From Podarcis gaigeae (lineage: Eukaryota): a DNA stretch of 64,000 nt. Made by a program: the position numbers and the translations under genes. The stretch lies in assembly GCA_964106915.2 (NCBI GenBank), contig OZ066921.1; one strand, 5' to 3'. Positions 7,601 to 57,900 of the stretch are shown here, piece after piece. Under the pieces are notes generated by a model, which was not told the DNA's origin, did not search any database, and saw only the letters and a program-made list of their open reading frames with translations. The stretch's first letter is position 1, and each line of letters opens with the position of its first letter.

Positions 7601-7936
7601 TATATGACTGACAACACACCCTTTCAAAGTGACAGCTGAATATGCACATGTATATTTAGAAAACATCATGGACCTAAGAACATTATCTGTTCTGGCCAAC
7701 TTATTTGCAAAAGCCAGAATTTGTCCGAGTTGTCCAAGCTGATCAAAACCAATGGATTTGATCAGCCCTTACTTAGCCTGTCTACAAGTGCTTTTCCAGT
7801 TAGCACTCAAACAGCTCTCCAGTTCTGAATACAGGATGGGTGTTGAAAGGTCTTGGCCCTAGGAGCATAGTGGTTCAATTCTCTGAAATGTGTTCTCTTT
7901 CTCTCTCTTTACCCTCCCTCAAGGCTTTGGGCTGCC

Positions 7937-9133
7937 ATGCTGAAGCTGACCAGGTTAATAGTTCTTGTGATCTTGGCGATACACGTCATTGCCCTCACCT
8001 TCTGGTTTCAGCTTCATGGCAGGAAATGTCCCCTGGCGCAGGAGCCATCCCAGGTGCACATTCTCATCCTCTCCTCCTGGAGGTCAGGGTCTTCTTTCGT
8101 CGGGCAGATCTTCAGCCAACACCCTGATGCCTTCTACATGATGGAGCCAGCCTGGCACATCTGGGCAACCATGTACCAAAACAGCGCCAAGGTCCTGCAC
8201 ATGGCAGTGCGGGACCTCATCCGGTCAGTCTTCAAGTGCGACATGTCAGTCTTCGATGCCTACCTTCCACAGAAGAGAAATGTGTCAGAACTCTTCCAGT
8301 GGGAGGTCAGCCGGGCCCTGTGTTCCCCACCAGTGTGCAACTCCTTCCAGCGCAGTGACTTCATCTCCAAGCATGCCTGCAAGATGCTCTGTAGGAAATC
8401 CCCCTTCAGCAAAGTCGAAGAGGCCTGCAGGTCTTACAGCCATGTTGTCCTGAAGGTGGTCCGGATCTTTGACCTCAAGGTGCTCTATCCTCTCCTTAAT
8501 GACCCCTCCCTGAACCTCAAAATCATCCACCTGGTCCGTGACCCCAGAGCCGTTTTCCACTCTCGCAAGAACACAGAAGGTAGCCTGGCCCGGGACACGA
8601 GGATTGTGCTGAGACACAAGAGGAATGCAATGGATACCGAGCCCTACGCTGCCATGCGGGAGATTTGCAAAAGTCATGTTGAGATTTACACTGAAGGCAG
8701 GCAGGCCCTTCCCAGCACCTTCCAAGATCGCTACCTCTTGGTGCGGTATGAAGATATTGCCAGCAATCCCTTGGCTAAAGCTGCTCAGCTCTACAGTTTT
8801 GCAGGACTGCCCTTCTCTCCTAACCTTCAGTCCTGGGTGCACAACATCACCCATGGGCAGGGCCTTGGCAAGCAGGCCTTTGATGTTGACTCCAGGGATG
8901 CAGTGAATGTGTCACAGGCTTGGAGGAAGGCCCTTCCTTATCTCCAAATAGCAAAGCTGCAAGAGGTCTGTAAGGATGCCTTGAAGTTACTGGGCTATCC
9001 GCTAGTTAGGTCTGAGGAAGAGCAGAAGAATATGGCCTCAGACCTCTTTTATGCCCAAACGCCTCTTGTCAATCAGGAAAGCAAAAGGAGCCTGGAAGCA
9101 TCACCTGCAATTTATTGGACTTGGACCAGATGA
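7937..9133 (+). CDS. CHST4: Carbohydrate (GlcNAc-6-O) sulfotransferase 4-like, single coding exon, 398 aa
   Basis: N-terminal type II TM segment, 5'-[14 protein letters not shown] and 3'-[11 protein letters not shown]. The C-terminal half has CHST4-type residues (FQWE, RYLLVRYED, LQSWVHNIT, LPY..., VRSEEEQ). Polypyrimidine acceptor ending AG at 7923 and Kozak gccATG. Confidence 0.85.
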   Translation: MLKLTRLIVLVILAIHVIALTFWFQLHGRKCPLAQEPSQVHILILSSWRSGSSFVGQIFSQHPDAFYMMEPAWHIWATMYQNSAKVLHMAVRDLIRSVFKCDMSVFDAYLPQKRNVSELFQWEVSRALCSPPVCNSFQRSDFISKHACKMLCRKSPFSKVEEACRSYSHVVLKVVRIFDLKVLYPLLNDPSLNLKIIHLVRDPRAVFHSRKNTEGSLARDTRIVLRHKRNAMDTEPYAAMREICKSHVEIYTEGRQALPSTFQDRYLLVRYEDIASNPLAKAAQLYSFAGLPFSPNLQSWVHNITHGQGLGKQAFDVDSRDAVNVSQAWRKALPYLQIAKLQEVCKDALKLLGYPLVRSEEEQKNMASDLFYAQTPLVNQESKRSLEASPAIYWTWTR

Positions 9134-9250
9134 GACATCAGAAGCTTCCTAACACTATTGGTCCATTCGGCTCACTATTTTCCACACTGACTGGCAGTGG
9201 CTCTGCCAGCAAGATGGCAGCTTGAACTGTTCCTGAAATACAGCAGTCAT

Positions 9251-9252
<2 letters not shown>

Positions 9253-9282
<30 letters not shown>
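9253..9282 (+). repeat. Poly(A) tract, 30 nt
   Basis: Uninterrupted A run 120 nt after the CHST4-like stop codon. Confidence 0.95.
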
Positions 9283-9284
<2 letters not shown>

Positions 9285-9754
9285 AAAAAATGCAACAGCC
9301 CACAAGGGAGAAGTTTGCCCAGCTCGTCACAGAATCTTGTCACTTCCATTTCTGCAAGTTTGCAGCCTGTTACAGCTGAAATTACGCCCAGGGACAGGGA
9401 TCTGGACACAGCAATGGAATCACCTCTTCCCTTTCTGTTTGAAAAGCTGGGGGGACAGATGGGCTTGGCTTACATTCAGGCCCTGAATCCAACAAGCACC
9501 CTTTCATAATATGGTCTCTTAATGGTAATATGGTCTGTTTTGCAGACTAGCACACTTATTAAGGCATAGGCTGTGTTAATTGGATTACCAGTGCCAGAAT
9601 GTTTGTGTGGTAACTAGGTTTTGTGGGAATGGCCAGTGTAAATGACATAAAAATCAATTTCTGTACTTTTCTGCATTTTCTTCCCTTCTGACTTAACTGT
9701 TGACAATTCCTACTCCTGAGCTGTGTATGTTTGTACCTGTAACTCAGGATAACA

Positions 9755-18100: not shown

Positions 18101-19220
18101 ATGTCCCCATGATAGGGCTTGGAGGCAAAAAAAGGTGTGAAGAGAAGGGAGAAGGCAGGAGGAAAGAACCCCAAAGGGATAATTTTGCCCGTGGGGGCTC
18201 CTTTGGCCAACACTTGGCCAAAGTTTCATTTCCAGGCAATATAGAAGCCCAGAGGGGACAACAACCTGCAAGATGAGTGGTAGTATTTGACAACCAGGAA
18301 GGTGGAAGCAGGAGGTGGGCCAGGGTGTCCCAGGCAAGTTGCTTCACCATAGTGTAGCAGTGATGCCAGATATGGCCAGCTAGTGGCTAGCTGAACCTTG
18401 CTGCCTTCTGGCTAGGAAAGCATCCTTCTGCCAGGCCTTACTGGTCCTGACTGGCAGCAGTGACTCTCTGTATGGCTTCAGGCAGGACTCCTTCCCAACC
18501 CTAGATGGAGATGATGCCAGGGTCTGAACCAGGGACACTTTCTGCATGCCAAGCAGGTGCTCTGATCCTGTCCTGCGGCAGAAGGCCTTTTGGCCCACTC
18601 CAGCTAAAGCAGCCCTGCTTACCAGCAGCAGATTCAGACGAGCTTCTGAGCTTGCGTCTCTGGGCAGGCAGGCAGAGGTCTTCCTTGCCCCGCAAGTGCT
18701 TCAGGTAGCGGTCGCGCATGGCCTGCCAGGAGTGCCGCGTAACCCGGGCCGCCTCCATCTCCTTCCAGACAGCGTTGCCACTGCCGGATGCCTGCCTGCC
18801 GCTGCTGCCTCTCGTGCTCCTCCGCAGGTGCAGCAGGATGGCCTGGTCTTCCACCTCGCTGAAGGGCAGGCGGCCCTCGGCAGCGCCCGTGTCCGCGGTG
18901 ACCGGCGGTGGTTGCAGGCGGTATGTCTCCAGCGGCAGGAGCTCCTGGCGGGCCACGCAGTCGGCGACGTAGCTGGCGGAGATGAAGACCTCCGAGGTTC
19001 TCGGCGGCACCTCTCCCGGCCGGGCCAGCAGCACCGCGCCCGGCTCCTGCACGCGGCACAGGCGCCCGCCGTGGCGCACGATCAGCGGGGCCAGCTCCAC
19101 CTTGGCCGCCCCGGGGCGCACGTAGAAGCTCAGGGGGCTGCCGTCCTCCCGCTGGAAGAACAGCCGAGGTTGCGGGGCAGAGCCATCCGGCTCACCTTCG
19201 GCCTCCGCTGTGCCCAGCAT
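15151..19220 (-). CDS. TERF2IP: Telomeric repeat-binding factor 2-interacting protein 1 (RAP1), 3 exons, about 389 aa
   Basis: Exons 19220-18623, 16984-16863 and 15600-15151 with GT-AG introns, phases 1 and 0, total 1170 nt. BRCT (FYVRPG..GG.LCRVQEPGA), Myb (FSEVED.AIL...HSWQAMRDRYLKHL) and RCT (TVTQAFLKNSGE...W..QDD..L...KYG.ENV.RR.AF) domains. Confidence 0.95.
18410..18565 (-). mobile_element. Squam3-like tRNA-derived SINE
   Basis: Reverse complement agagcacctgcttggcatgcagaaag..ccctggttca..ggcatc..ctgccagtcag matches the Squam3 body. Confidence 0.65.
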
Positions 19221-28820: not shown

Positions 28821-31800
28821 ATGTGGACTGCCGACGAGGTGGCCGCCCTGTGCTACAGCCACTACGAGACCCGGCTGCCTAAGCAAGGGAAGCCGGCGGC
28901 TGGTCGAGAGTGGACTCTGCTAGCGGCGGTGCTGCAGGTGGAGAGCGCAGGTGAGGCTCGGAGAGGACCAGATGGGCTCTGGCTTCTGCGGGGGGGACGG
29001 GGAGGCGCCCTGGCCAAAGGGGGCGCCTTAATGGGAAACCCAGCGAGGGCCTTTCATTTTATGGTGTTGATGTCCAAGCTTTCTGTGGCCGTTCTTGATT
29101 AAGCTTATTAAGCATTCCAGCCTATTTCCATGGGTCTGCCTGATGCACCGATATTCCTTGCAGGGGTAGCTGTGCTGCTGGATATAACGGAGGAGGCTGC
29201 TGCTGCCTTCAGCTCCTCCTAGCAGAACTTGGTTGCCCCAAGTGAGTTACCTTAGTTGTGTCCCTGGCTTGTGTGGCAGATCACCTCCCCGCTGACTGAA
29301 GAGGATGGCATACTTGGGGGGAAGAGTTCCATTTGGGATTAGGGTGTTGATTCCAGTGCTTCAAGAGCTTCTGGTCTGTTTCAGAGCACTTGTGCCAGTT
29401 ACTGTCATTAAAGCTTTCAGTGGATTAGGACCTGGTTACTTTATCCCATATAAATATCACACCCCCCCCCAGCACTGAGACTTTCAGGAGAGGGGTTTCA
29501 CTGTCCGCCCCCTGCAAAAAGTAAGTGAGCCTCTCTGTGATTCTGTGAAGCCAGGGTGTTTGGTTCTAGAATAAAGGAAAGAGACAAGAGCTGTGGGTGA
29601 TTTGGTATCTCCCCTGAAGGGGATTGCATTCAGTGGCAGCACCCAGGCTCTGGAACTCCCTTCGCAGGGAGCCTGGGTAGGCTCTCCCATCGTGCCTCCA
29701 ACCCTGAGGAATAACAAGAAATAACTTTCATGGGACCTTCATCTATTGGGACTTAAGAAGTGTGTGTGTGAAATGAGGGTAAGACACCACAGAGGCAACT
29801 GCAGAACTGCCGTTGCTTCAGCCTTGCTGCTCCTGAGCCTGCAGATTTTCTCTACCCTGCTGCGGACATTGTCTGTCCCTCTTCCAACTACCATTATTTC
29901 CCCCCTCAGAAATAAAGGCGATTGTTGCCATCGGAACTGGAACGAAATGCATTGGGCAGTCAGAAATGAGGAAGACTGGTAAGCAGCCCCCTTCCCACCT
30001 GCTGGAGCTAGGTCCCCCCTCCTCACAAGCCCCTTGCAATGGAGCAAGGGCAGCTGCACACTGGTGTGGCTACGTGCTTGGCTTCCTCCTGGAGAGGAAC
30101 CGTGTCGGGCTTACTGTGTTGGTTTTGGTGGTGCTGCTTCTGCAGGAGACATCCTCAATGACAGTCATGCCGAAGTGGTGGCCAAGAGGAGCTTCCAGAG
30201 GTGAGCAATGAGCTTGAGGGTGGACTGGGGGCGGGGGTTGGAAGATTCCCTGGAATGTGCAGCTTCTTTGGGGGCCTGCTTATTCCAGCTCTGTAGCCCT
30301 TTAAGCCAGCTAAACTTTGCACTTTTTCTACCTGCAATGCATCTGAGAAAAGAACAGGACTTGCTTGAATTGGCTGATCAATTATTTTAAGAATTTGTAA
30401 ACTGCTGTACGTTCAAAGAGTACCTGAGCTGCATACAAAAAACAGAATATAAAATGTAATACAAATTACAAAGCAAAGTTAAGAACACAAAGTCAACCAA
30501 AATTAAAAGCTGCAGAAATAGAATGGACTAATTGAGGAAAGCTTGTGGGGGAAAATAAGTTTTCAATGGACATAAAAAAGTGTTTCTGTCTGGCAAATTA
30601 ATCTCATCCAACAGTGCCTGCAGGTGTGCTCCCACCACCACCTCAATCACCCTTCCAAAATAGGGGGATTGGCAACTTGGGATAGTTGTCAAGAACCAGA
30701 GTAGACCATCTCTGCTGATTGGACCATCTTCCAGATACATCCCAATGACAGAATCCAACAGTATGCTAGCAAACATTTACCCACCTAATAATATAAGCCT
30801 GCATTCTAGGGTAGCAGCTCACCCTGCCTAGGTTGTCCTAAGCTTTCATCAGAAGATAGGTTAGTCATACACACCCTCCCCACAGGAATGCTTCTCTCTC
30901 ACCAAGGAGTGCCCTCCAACATCAGGTTCTTTCAGCACTCTCATAAATGCAAATTAAAACAAGCAAATGAAGTGGCAGTTTTTCATCAGTCCCAGGGAGG
31001 ATCGCATTAGATTCAGGTGCCCCCAGAGGGGGTATTGCAGCTGTCCTCTTGCCCCCAGGTACCTCCTTCACCAGCTGTGGCTGGCAGCTGTGTGCCAAGA
31101 GCCCAGCATCTTCCATCCAGGAACAGAGGAAGGGAAGTGGATTCTCAAACCACACATCACATTTATTTTTTTCTCCAGCCACACACCTTGTGAGTATGTC
31201 AGAACAATCCTTTTGGTTGGGGGAATCTCTCCCCTGCCCTTGGTGGCCTCCCTTGGAGCTGGGTGGTAGCCTGGTGTGGCTGTGCTGCATTGGTGGAGGT
31301 GGAAAGTTCCTGCAGTGAAATTGTGAAAGAGCCTGGCTGCCAAATAGCCCAGCATATCACTGAGCCACTGGGCTGGATATAAATGTAACTGAAACTCACT
31401 GTGGATAAGCTATAAAAAGGGTGAATTCTACACTATGCATTGTTAGGAAAGGGATTGAAAATAAATGGCCAGTATCTTGATGCCATTATACAAATTTATG
31501 AGGAGAGCATACTTGGAAGACTGTACAGCTTTGGTTGCCTCACCCCAAATGAGGATGGGTTCTCTGCTCCAGGGAATTTTTCCTCTGTGGGAGAGAGCCC
31601 CTGCTTGTCTTTGTCTTCTAAGAGCCCACCCTCCATTTCTTCTAGGTGGGGATGCTTCAATTATCCCAGTCTTGGAAGTGGAAGCACAGCCTTGCCAGCC
31701 CCTGAAGCCATCAAAGGCAGCTAAGAGGGGCATCAGTGACTGTGGGCCCCTGGCAGCTGAAAGGGAGTCTGAAGAGACGGCAGCTGACCATTTCCCCAAG

Positions 31801-33900
31801 AGACAAAAAGTCTGTGGTGCTGAGCTCCCTGCTGAGGACCGTGTAGGAACCAAAGTGGTGGATGTCCACAGAACTGGGGCCAAGTGTGTCCCAGGAGAGG
31901 CAGGGGATTCCCAGCGGCCAGGTGGCGACTACCACACCGTGGGGCTTCTACGGATCAAGCCAGGCCGTGGGGCCCAGACAGCCTCCATGTCTTGCAGCGA
32001 TAAGCTGTTGCGCTGGAATGTCCTTGGCTGCCAGGGAGCCCTCCTGATGCATTTCCTCCAGCAGCCCATCTACTTTTCAGCCATGGTTGTGGGCCGTTGT
32101 CCCTACAGCCAGGAGGCCCTGCGGAGGGCCATCGTTGCAAGGTGAGCAAGTTGTGAGGATGGGGAGGGTATTAGCCAGGTGGATGGAGCATTGCAGTTAC
32201 TTCTGGGGATCATGCTTGTTTCCTTATTCCAAACACTGGATCGTGTCATGTTGCTGAACGGTGGTTGTGCTATTCTGTCCCCCAGGGGTCTGCCTGTTTT
32301 GTGTTTGCCAGATGGCTTCCGAGTTCAGGAGCTGGAAATCCTGCAGTCCCAGCTGGGCTTCATCCACAGCCGTGAAGCAGTCCAAGCCAACCATGCTCTG
32401 CACCAAGGGAGGGTGGTGCCCTGTGGGGCAGGTGGGTGTCTCCAGGGGCGTTTATGAGGGTGCTTGGGCTTTCTGCTCCCCTTCCCTTGCTTGGAGGTGG
32501 TGGGAGGGAAACCCTGCTGTGGGAATTGATATTGTTTGTATGCATTACCAGAGCCATAAAAGTCTGAGGGCAATTCCAACGTTGCCATCTAACCAAAGAG
32601 ACCAACTTGCATTGCAGGGGTTGGACTAGATGACCCTTGGGGTCTCTTCCAACTCTAAAATTGTATGAGAAGGAAACTTGGAGGTTGGGGTAGAGTGGGG
32701 AGCAATAGATTTCCTTCTGGAAGTTCCCTGGGTATTTGTGCTGACTTGATTGATAAACAGATATTATCGGCAGAGCAAATAGACATTACTGATAAAATTG
32801 CTGTTTGTAATAATAGAAAGCAATGCTGGCTGCATTGGAAGGAATAAAATCACCAGGTAAGAGGAAGGGAAAGGAGGAAAAGGAGAGGCAGCAGCTAACC
32901 AATGTGTGTGCATTTGGTGTCAGCGCATACCTGGGCAGCCGCCTTCTTCTCAGGGATATGGCCAAAGCACTTGTTGAGATGTTGGGTTCTGAGCTGGGGG
33001 TTTTAAGGGAGGGGGAAAGATGTCATTGTGTTACTACCTAGCGATAGGGTTGCCAGCATTGGGGCAGCAAAAGGCAAAGCTGGTGATCCACAGCTGGTAA
33101 CAGTGGTAGGAGCAAAGGCCACCGTCTGTTGGGCTGCCTGCAAAAGAATAACCATCTGAGTTGGGGGCTTTACAGGATGTCACTTAGTGTTTCCCTTGCA
33201 TATTTTGTGGCAAGTGACTCCTCCTTCCTCTCTTTCCTCCCAGCTATCAGCTGGAGTGCTGTTCCGGAGCACCCACTTGATGTCACTTCACATGGCTTCA
33301 AGCAGGGGTCAACCAAGAAAGTGATTGGAAGCCCAAAGTCCAGGTGTGTGTCACAGGTGGCAGGAGCCACAGCTAGGTAGTGGGGTGTGTGTGAGAGAGA
33401 GGCAGATGCAGTCCTTTGGATGATTTCTGTGTGCGCGCTGAGTGAGCCAGACTTGTTGAATTTCAGAGAAGAGGTGAGTCTCAAACCACAAGAGCCCGAC
33501 TCTTTCAATTGACTTCATTCTGTACCACCCCCACCCTGCTTCTTCTGAACTGGTTTCATGGCAGACCTTTTGTCCGGTTTTTAACTTCCTTACCATTAGT
33601 GATAAATGATTCAGGTCAGTTGCTTGGTCTTGCCATAGGAACCTAACAAAAGCCCTAGAGCTGGATTAGGCCAAAGATGGCCCATCTAGCCCTGTGTCCT
33701 GTTCTCACAGTGGCCAACCAGATGCCATAAAGGGAAGCCTACAAGTAGGATCCAAGCACAAACAGAGCATTTTACCACTCAGGATCCCACCAGTGACTGG
33801 TAATCAGAGGCATGTCGCCATCTTGTCTAGTAGCTTATACGCCATCAACATGCCTCCTGCTGTTGAAAGTCATTGTGGCCAAGTGGGCTGTGAAGCATTC

Positions 33901-56721: not shown

Positions 56722-57900
56722 ATGGTGAGGATCCGAATATCCAGCACTACAGTTGCAATCTTCCTTGTGATTCAGACAGGATTTCTACTGTTTTTGTGTG
56801 TTCAGCATGGTGGCTTTATGTCTCAGTCTGAAGAGAAACCACCCCAGGTGCACATTCTCATCCTCTCCTCCTGGAGGTCAGGGTCTTCTTTCGTCGGGCA
56901 GCTCTTCAGCCAACACCCTGATGTCTTCTACTTGATGGAGCCAGCCTGGCACGTGTGGGTAACCATGTACCAAAACAGTGCCAAGGTCTTGCACATGGCA
57001 GTGCGGGACCTCATCCGGTCAGTCTTCAAGTGTGACATGTCGGTCTTCGATGCCTACCTGCCATGGAAGAGAAATGTGTCAGATCTTTTCCAGTGGGCAG
57101 TGAGTCGTGCCCTGTGCACAGATCCTGTCTGTGAATTGTTCCACCGCACTGATATCACCAGCGAAAGTGCCTGCAAGGCTGTCTGTGGGAAGTCCCCCTT
57201 CAGCAAAGTGGAAGAGGCCTGCAAGAGCTATAGCCACGTTGTCCTGAAGGAAGTCCGGATCTTTGACCTCAAGGTGCTTTATCCTCTCCTCACTGACCCC
57301 TCCCTGAACCTCAAAGTCATCCACCTCGTCCGTGACCCCAGAGCTGTTGTGAAATCCCGGGAGCAATCAGCAAAAGCTCTTGCCCGTGACAATGGGATTG
57401 TCTTGAGCATGAATGGCACAAAAGTGGAAGATGGCCAGTACAAAGTCCTGCAGGAGATCTGTAGAAGCCACGTTCAGATTTATGAAACAGCAACCCTGAA
57501 ACCTCCAAGTTTTCTGAAAGATCGTTACTTGATGATCCGGTTTGAAGATCTTGTACGAGATCCTTTAGTGGAAATTACAGCAATGTATAAATTTTCAGGT
57601 CTTCAGCTGACCAGCAAACTTGAAAACTGGATCTATAATATCACCCATGGACAAGGGCCAAGTAGGAAGAGGGAGGCCTTCCAAATCACTTCCCGAGATG
57701 CAGTCAATGTCTCCCAGGCATGGAGGACTGTTCTTTCGTTTCAGAAAGTCAAGCAAGTGCAAGAGGTTTGCAAGGGTGCCTTAAATATACTCGGGTACCA
57801 ACTTGTAGATTCTGAGAAAGAACAGAAAGATCTGTCATTCGATTTAGTGTTGCCACATCGAAAAAGTCAATTCAGCTGGGCATCCTTTAGTGAAAATTAG
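56722..57900 (+). CDS. CHST6: Carbohydrate sulfotransferase 6 (corneal GlcNAc-6-O-sulfotransferase; CHST5/6 orthologue), 392 aa
   Basis: ATG at 56722, TM segment, [49 protein letters not shown] and C-terminal DLVLP....FSWAS. Lies directly downstream of TMEM231. Confidence 0.93.

Follow-up and report, generated by a model that had tools for sequence, protein, structure and literature searches.

The 64,000-nucleotide stretch of Podarcis gaigeae DNA analysed here (the window) contains two sulfotransferase copies according to a tblastn search, CHST4 and CHST5 only. They have the same orientation and lie 48.8 kb apart. The two genes and the exons recognised between them are listed below.

7937–9133, plus strand: CHST4 orthologue (GlcNAc 6-O-sulfotransferase), an intact single coding exon of 398 aa, assigned from the open reading frame, Pfam and trees
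18501–19220, minus strand: TERF2IP exons, between CHST4 and CHST5, with Rap1 Myb and BRCT domains
31465–32145, plus strand: ADAT1 exons, between CHST4 and CHST5
56722–57900, plus strand: CHST5 orthologue, an intact main coding exon of 392 aa, assigned from the open reading frame and trees

Both proteins have a hydrophobic N-terminus and match the Pfam families Sulfotransfer_1 and Sulfotransfer_3, with the Sulfotransfer_1 matches (1e-15 and 1e-16) extending over aa 41–352 and aa 44–354. The motifs SSWRSGSS and RDPRAV are present in both proteins; we take them to be the 5'-phosphosulfate-binding (5'-PSB) and the 3'-phosphate-binding (3'-PB) motifs of the PAPS site, respectively. The best matches of the window CHST4 are the CHST4 proteins of lacertids (95–97% for Podarcis and Lacerta, 92% for Zootoca), and no exact copy of it was present in the protein collection searched. 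The window CHST5 matches a Podarcis muralis protein (P0100) at 100% identity along 392 aa. A search of PDB sequences returned no solved structure related to these proteins, and the listed sequence sets containing the stretch included no RNA records. In a C-terminal protein tree of 44 taxa, the window genes fall in the CHST4 and the CHST5 clades, each supported at 100/100.

CHST4 has been described as a local duplicate of CHST5 that arose in the tetrapod ancestor, and the pair is found in tandem in tetrapods (PMC7353957). CHST6 is restricted to primates according to the same study, and the 'CHST6' of non-primates is CHST5 (PMC7353957). The partner gene in the window, which the initial annotation had called CHST6, is therefore the single sauropsid CHST5 orthologue. 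A third 'CHST4/5-like' gene has been described in lacertids (PMC7353957) and lies outside the present window. It is noted that this CHST5 orthologue is listed by NCBI as CHST5-like or CHST6-like. As to the neighbourhood in other squamates, the CHST5 model of Lacerta is overlapped at its 5' end by a gene model for TMEM231, and TERF2IP and a class-II tRNA synthetase adjoin CHST4 in Varanus.

The alignment of the two window genes falls into the following parts, where "conversion" stands for the very probable origin of the similar blocks that is argued below.

8049–8303, plus strand: conversion tract 1 in CHST4, aa 38–122, holding SSWRSGSS; 94.1% identical to 56843–57097, dS 0.155
8049–8107, plus strand: a 59-nt stretch identical in both genes
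8304–8395, plus strand: middle segment escaping conversion, aa 123–153, 92 nt, Cys-rich and paralogue-specific; 63% identity
8396–8554, plus strand: conversion tract 2 in CHST4, aa 154–206, ending at RDPRAV; 89.9% identical to 57190–57348, dS 0.32
8555–9133, plus strand: C-terminal part of CHST4, unconverted; dS 2.4 and dN 0.41 versus CHST5, carrying the orthology signal
56843–57097, plus strand: conversion tract 1 in CHST5, from the same alignment; GC3 0.74 versus 0.42–0.57 in the unconverted parts
57190–57348, plus strand: conversion tract 2 in CHST5; GC3 0.72 versus 0.45 in the C-terminal part

A recount of the ungapped alignments gave 15 mismatches in 253 nt between 8051–8303 and 56845–57097 (94.1% identity) and 16 in 159 nt between 8396–8554 and 57190–57348 (89.9% identity), exactly the numbers given in the initial annotation. 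The first 57 nt of 8051–8303, said there to be identical, indeed lie within the perfect run of 59 nt at 8049–8107. The reported collapse of identity outside the core was also seen, with values of 41% at 7937–8048 (ungapped) and 56% at 8555–8800. The paralogue dS (Nei-Gojobori) is 0.155 for 8048–8305 and 0.32 for 8396–8554, versus 1.8 in the transmembrane (TM)/stem part (1.1 when computed on a 12-sequence alignment), 1.13 in the middle segment and 2.4 in the C-terminus. This difference, 0.15 and 0.32 in the tracts against 1.1–2.4 elsewhere, bears out the earlier proposal of ectopic conversion between old paralogues. For dN between the paralogues, the tracts give about 0.05 and the other parts 0.37–0.85. 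When the comparison is confined to codons for the same residue in both proteins, the codon identity is 0.83 within aa 25–204 versus 0.42 outside, and the clustering of synonymous identity in the window was reached by none of 300 permutations. Based on the dS, same-residue codon and permutation results, the mosaic in the window goes far beyond chance and does not follow from amino-acid constraint. The 59-nt identical run is not significant alone at 6% divergence. Whether it points to a very recent event was also considered, but Lacerta has two differences there, and the run was set aside as only a hint.

The affinity of the sequence switches at least four times within 510 nt, at 8048/8049, 8303/8304, 8395/8396 and 8554/8555, and paralogue-diagnostic bases are retained at 8304–8373 and from 8555 on. 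These switches bear on the alternative that a single unequal crossover, instead of short-patch conversion, generated a hybrid gene. Tandem genes in the same orientation have the geometry required for such an event, but a crossover predicts one breakpoint together with 48 kb deleted or duplicated, while the TERF2IP and ADAT1 exons are still located between the two genes. In each gene, moreover, the 5' end, the middle segment and the 3' half have all remained those of that gene. With no fewer than four affinity switches in 510 nt, we regard a hybrid from one crossover as excluded, its probability being very low.

The cores are 90–94% identical with exact runs of 43–59 nt, which could mislead polishing, and it is conceivable that the reads of one paralogue built or corrected the core of the other during assembly, through collapse or polishing. 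To set against this, contigs from four public runs, carrying three organism labels and belonging to two studies, were compared with 7800–9300. The contigs, built independently from the four runs, reproduce CHST4 across 7800–9199 with 0–4 differences. In these contigs 8049–8107 and 8196–8238 appear as separate nodes with approximately twice the flanking depth, and the node at 8049–8107 branches into the upstream flanks of both genes, with the branch at 8045 leading into CHST5's own upstream sequence. In addition, 31 fixed differences are retained within the tracts. Five other squamate assemblies display this mosaic as well, that of Lacerta agilis with substitutions of its own. An assembly or polishing artefact is very unlikely given the double-depth branching contigs, which are contig-level evidence, and the five other assemblies, and the mosaic described in the initial annotation is considered real.

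The window genes were aligned by codon with the CHST4 and CHST5 coding sequences of five further squamates (Lacerta agilis, Rhineura floridana, Varanus komodoensis, Hemicordylus capensis and Eublepharis macularius), giving a DNA-level comparison of six squamate lineages, the window included. The within-species dS values between the two paralogues are as follows.

Window: core1 0.15, core2 0.32
Lacerta: core1 0.17, core2 0.28
Rhineura: core1 0.39, core2 0.21
Varanus: core1 0.19, core2 0.03
Hemicordylus: core1 0.69, core2 2.7
Eublepharis: core1 0.25, core2 0.64

The paralogue dS in the middle and C-terminal parts ranges from 1.1 to saturated in all six squamates. For the middle segment alone it is 1.1–2.9 in all six, with paralogue-diagnostic bases kept in each. 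The dS is non-uniform along the genes in the window and in the five other squamates, as the conversion proposal had led to expect. In five species, the clustering of synonymous identity is stronger than in every one of 300 permutations; in Hemicordylus, it is stronger than in 298 of 300. In the codon map, the outer limits at aa 38 and aa 206 are common to all six lineages. The homogenised span had been described as running from the 5'-PSB to the 3'-PB motif; these outer limits stand, and the span is not continuous, with the 92 nt of 8304–8395 being skipped in six of six squamates. The Varanus paralogues share identical runs of 144 nt and 114 nt. The core dN between paralogues is 0.01–0.11 in the five markedly homogenised lineages and 0.18–0.19 in Hemicordylus.

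It should be mentioned that a mosaic at the protein level was rejected as proof of conversion. The protein identity between paralogues is 72–98% in the core and about 46% in the C-terminus in every reptile pair compared, largely a matter of purifying selection on the PAPS-binding core. Since the protein mosaic is universal in reptiles, the case for conversion rests on synonymous sites and tree topology. The same protein identities are what would be seen if no DNA had been exchanged and the core had been frozen since the duplication by purifying selection on the protein, perhaps also on codons or mRNA structure. Such a frozen core is in agreement with the core dN of about 0.05 and with the near absence of paralogue-diagnostic amino-acid columns in aa 38–206 across sauropsids, where only 1 of the 16 strict columns is found in core1 and none in core2. 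(The diagnostic columns were tried as a map of the tracts as well; 16 are too few, though they exposed the peafowl case described below.) However, the orthologue dS in the core is 0.26–0.8, comparable with 0.45–1.3 in the C-terminus. With an orthologue dS in this ordinary range, the core does not qualify as a cold spot for synonymous change, and synonymous sites there are free to vary. Constraint also cannot yield synonymous states shared by the two paralogues in a lineage-specific manner, as in the long identical runs of Varanus.

Region-specific trees provide a further comparison of conversion with a frozen core. In the C-terminus tree, CHST4 and CHST5 are reciprocally monophyletic with support of 100/100. 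In the core1 tree, the CHST4 and CHST5 of the same lineage group together in Varanus (100/99), in Eublepharis (98/92) and, for the four lacertid sequences, with only moderate support (88/86). Monophyly of CHST4 was rejected by the AU test for core1 (p=0.028) and for core2 (p=0.013). When only third codon positions of the core are used, the lineage grouping is recovered again (Varanus 100/99, Eublepharis 97/98, lacertids 91/95, the last again moderate), and a monophyletic CHST4 is rejected by the AU test (p=0.0005). Outside the core, third positions from the middle segment plus the C-terminus split CHST4 from CHST5 at 100/100. The core tree does not unite the Rhineura CHST4 and CHST5 as sisters, although a tree forcing them together was not rejected (AU p=0.07). 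The trees are incongruent, by lineage in the core and by orthology in the C-terminus, in the manner predicted by the initial annotation. Because the third-position trees group by lineage, selective constraint is excluded as the explanation of the mosaic, and we consider a core frozen without DNA exchange to be highly improbable. Repeated non-allelic gene conversion between CHST4 and CHST5, affecting two blocks of the core, is very probably the explanation.

The timing of the exchange in lacertids can be approached from the core tree, in which the window CHST4 and the Lacerta CHST4 are sisters within the lacertid core clade (100/99). The lacertid paralogue dS of 0.15–0.19 is larger than the Podarcis-Lacerta orthologue dS (0.10) and smaller than the lacertid-Rhineura orthologue dS (0.26–0.58). 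The sister grouping and this bracketing by dS place the last large homogenisation of tract 1 on the lacertid stem. The main lacertid event is thus old, falling after the amphisbaenian split and before the Podarcis-Lacerta split, and is not private to the window species. The two species-specific shared sites at 8206 and 8318 are candidates for exchange after the Podarcis-Lacerta split, as are approximately four sites with a CHST4-derived base in one CHST5; the candidate sites overall are 8095, 8098, 8138, 8206, 8318 and 8398. They are suggestive only of CHST4/CHST5 exchange after that split.

The direction of copying can be read at the 3' end of tract 1. In the 44-taxon core protein tree, the window CHST4 pairs with the window CHST5 (95/96), and this pair is nested among the CHST5 proteins (97/94); in the corresponding C-terminal tree, the window CHST4 sits with the Rhineura CHST4. 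The lacertid CHST4 reads QKRNVS(E/D)LFQWEV, and other CHST4s read E(Q/R/P)(K/R)N(K/Q)(S/T)ALFQWE(A/V). The window CHST4 falls in the CHST5 core clade because the lacertid CHST4 has CHST5-type residues at aa 112–122, and copying at this end of the tract proceeded from CHST5 to CHST4 in lacertids. At 8166, both Varanus genes have the CHST4 state and both Eublepharis genes have the CHST5 state. The direction of copying differs among lineages.

Separate conversion events are indicated in Varanus, where the event would be very recent, and in Eublepharis; a separate event probably occurred in Rhineura as well. In a peafowl, the core of CHST4 clusters with the CHST5 of birds (99/90) and the C-terminus with stork CHST4, and CHST5 residues are found at aa 123, 143 and 145. 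At the protein level, the peafowl probably underwent an independent event that covered the middle segment too. The recurrence of conversion asserted in the initial annotation is seen across squamates; in lacertids, the main event predates the Podarcis-Lacerta split.

The base composition of CHST5 differs along the gene. In the six species, its GC3 is 0.57–0.83 in the cores (at least 0.68 in all but the core2 of Eublepharis) and 0.37–0.57 in its remaining parts (TM, middle, C-terminus), while GC3 is high along the whole length of CHST4. The high GC3 of the CHST5 core may reflect either GC-biased conversion or a net import from the GC-richer CHST4.

We propose the following course of events for repeated conversion. 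CHST4 and CHST5 duplicated in an early tetrapod, and their synonymous sites are saturated outside the core. Short patches of one gene have then very probably been copied repeatedly onto the other, without reciprocal transfer, within aa 38–122 and aa 154–206, two blocks bounded by the PAPS-site motifs for 5'-phosphosulfate and 3'-phosphate binding. Purifying selection may keep the core protein nearly identical in the two paralogues, which could leave enough DNA homology for strand invasion, and conversion would in this way sustain itself. Outside the two blocks (TM/stem, 92-nt middle segment, C-terminal half), the genes may have diverged too far to pair, or selection may guard functions specific to each paralogue. 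The GC3 of the CHST5 core could have been raised above that of the rest of the gene by GC-biased repair or by import from CHST4. The significance of the finding is that paralogues of approximately tetrapod age, with unrelated genes between them, can still exchange sequence where purifying selection keeps them alike.

A chimeric enzyme with altered specificity, as suggested in the initial annotation, finds no support in the comparison: in the five markedly homogenised lineages the two paralogues have an almost identical core protein, and conversion has left the parts specific to each paralogue alone. Purifying selection acts on CHST4, as seen from a dN of 0.03 and a dS of 0.10 in the C-terminal part between the window and Lacerta. 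The map of converted and protected segments offers a testable guess at the segments that determine acceptor specificity in GlcNAc 6-O-sulfotransferases. A more far-reaching reading, which we put forward tentatively and consider rather unlikely, is that conversion is a standing process across tetrapods with limits set by selection, the parts never homogenised in the six squamate lineages (TM/stem, the 30-residue Cys-rich middle segment and the C-terminal half) being the modules by which CHST4 and CHST5 differ in acceptor choice and localisation, and the PAPS core an interchangeable cassette. If this were true, the tract map would amount to a domain swap carried out by nature, from which the site of specificity could be predicted, and published full-length trees, including the budding of CHST4 from CHST5 in tetrapods, would be partly distorted by concerted evolution.

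Interlocus conversion between old linked paralogues in conserved exons is known from the globin genes, the primate L/M opsins, RHD/RHCE and CYP21A2/CYP21A1P. The sodium-channel paralogues of newts are another example of interlocus conversion (PMC8476164). The CHST4/CHST5 case resembles the known ones in having short non-reciprocal tracts within diverged flanks, depressed dS in the tracts, and grouping by species in the tracts with orthology elsewhere; the raised GC3 of the CHST5 tracts may be a further parallel. Unlike in the known cases, the two genes are duplicates from the tetrapod ancestor with at least two unrelated genes between them, and the same two blocks have been converted independently in several squamate lineages. 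A full-text search of openly accessible literature returned no report of gene conversion or concerted evolution for these genes (CHST4/5/6, GlcNAc6ST). In human macular corneal dystrophy type II, rearrangements of the CHST5/CHST6 upstream region are known, which concern a different, primate-specific pair. The process is an ordinary one in a gene pair for which it is apparently unreported, and neither a new mechanism nor a changed enzyme is indicated.

The C-terminal trees obtained here agree with the history that Ocampo Daza and Haitina (2020) give for the C6OST family (PMC7353957). The words 'conversion' and 'concerted' are absent from that paper, and its full-length protein trees average two conflicting histories for this pair. 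For CHST4, CHST5 and CHST6, neither full-length trees nor dS dating can be relied on as long as the core is included. These genes are named inconsistently by annotation pipelines; the Lacerta agilis CHST4 is annotated as 'CHST6-like', a misnaming that is possibly due to its CHST5-like core.

Two exons of other genes lie between CHST4 (7937-9133, plus strand) and CHST5 (56722-57900, plus strand) in the window:

18501-19220, minus strand, TERF2IP exon 1 with the Rap1 Myb and BRCT domains
31465-32145, plus strand, ADAT1 exon with the A_deamin domain

At least two unrelated genes therefore separate the exchanging paralogues, and their placement is consistent with the gene order beside the Varanus and Lacerta copies. 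The surroundings of TERF2IP exon 1 are CpG-rich, with a GC content of 0.64.

The degree of core homogenisation was compared among lineages. In Varanus komodoensis, the synonymous divergence (dS) between CHST4 and CHST5 (coding sequences L005 and L006) is 0.03 in core2, the second conversion block, and stretches of 144 and 114 nt match base for base between the two genes. The conversion in this species is very recent, being far younger than the lacertid one. The weakest core homogenisation was found in Hemicordylus capensis, in which CHST4 (coding sequence L007:301-1512) has long branches and an extreme GC content at third codon positions (GC3) of 0.90-1.00 along the whole gene, while GC3 is normal in the neighbouring CHST5.

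The codon at 8270-8271 / 57064-57065 is CAG (Q) in lacertid CHST4 and TGG (W) in lacertid CHST5. The corresponding CHST5 codon of Rhineura and Hemicordylus is CGG (R), from which each of the two lacertid states is a single CpG transition away. This seemingly diagnostic site may lie inside the converted tract after all.

In the peafowl Pavo cristatus, the core and middle segment of the CHST4 protein (P0038) have residues of the CHST5 type at amino acids 123, 143 and 145. They cluster with bird CHST5 (support 99/90), whereas the C-terminus of the protein clusters with stork CHST4. Judging from these sequences, a separate CHST5-to-CHST4 conversion probably took place in this galliform. The galliform conversion would take in the middle segment, which is spared in squamates.

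The Lacerta agilis CHST4 orthologue (P0225) is annotated as 'CHST6-like'. In Candoia aspera, a 510-aa model named 'tyrosine aminotransferase isoform X2' (P0009) bears sulfotransferase domains; it is probably a read-through model joining neighbouring genes.

A repeat is located immediately 3' of the CHST4 stop codon:

9170-9290, repeat marked by a contig depth jump and an A run

At 9177-9227 the contigs of four sequencing runs show a roughly 10-fold rise in depth. Further on, at 9245-9290, there is a stretch of some 35 A residues. The element has the appearance of a SINE-type insertion carrying a poly-A tail, within or close to the CHST4 3' UTR.
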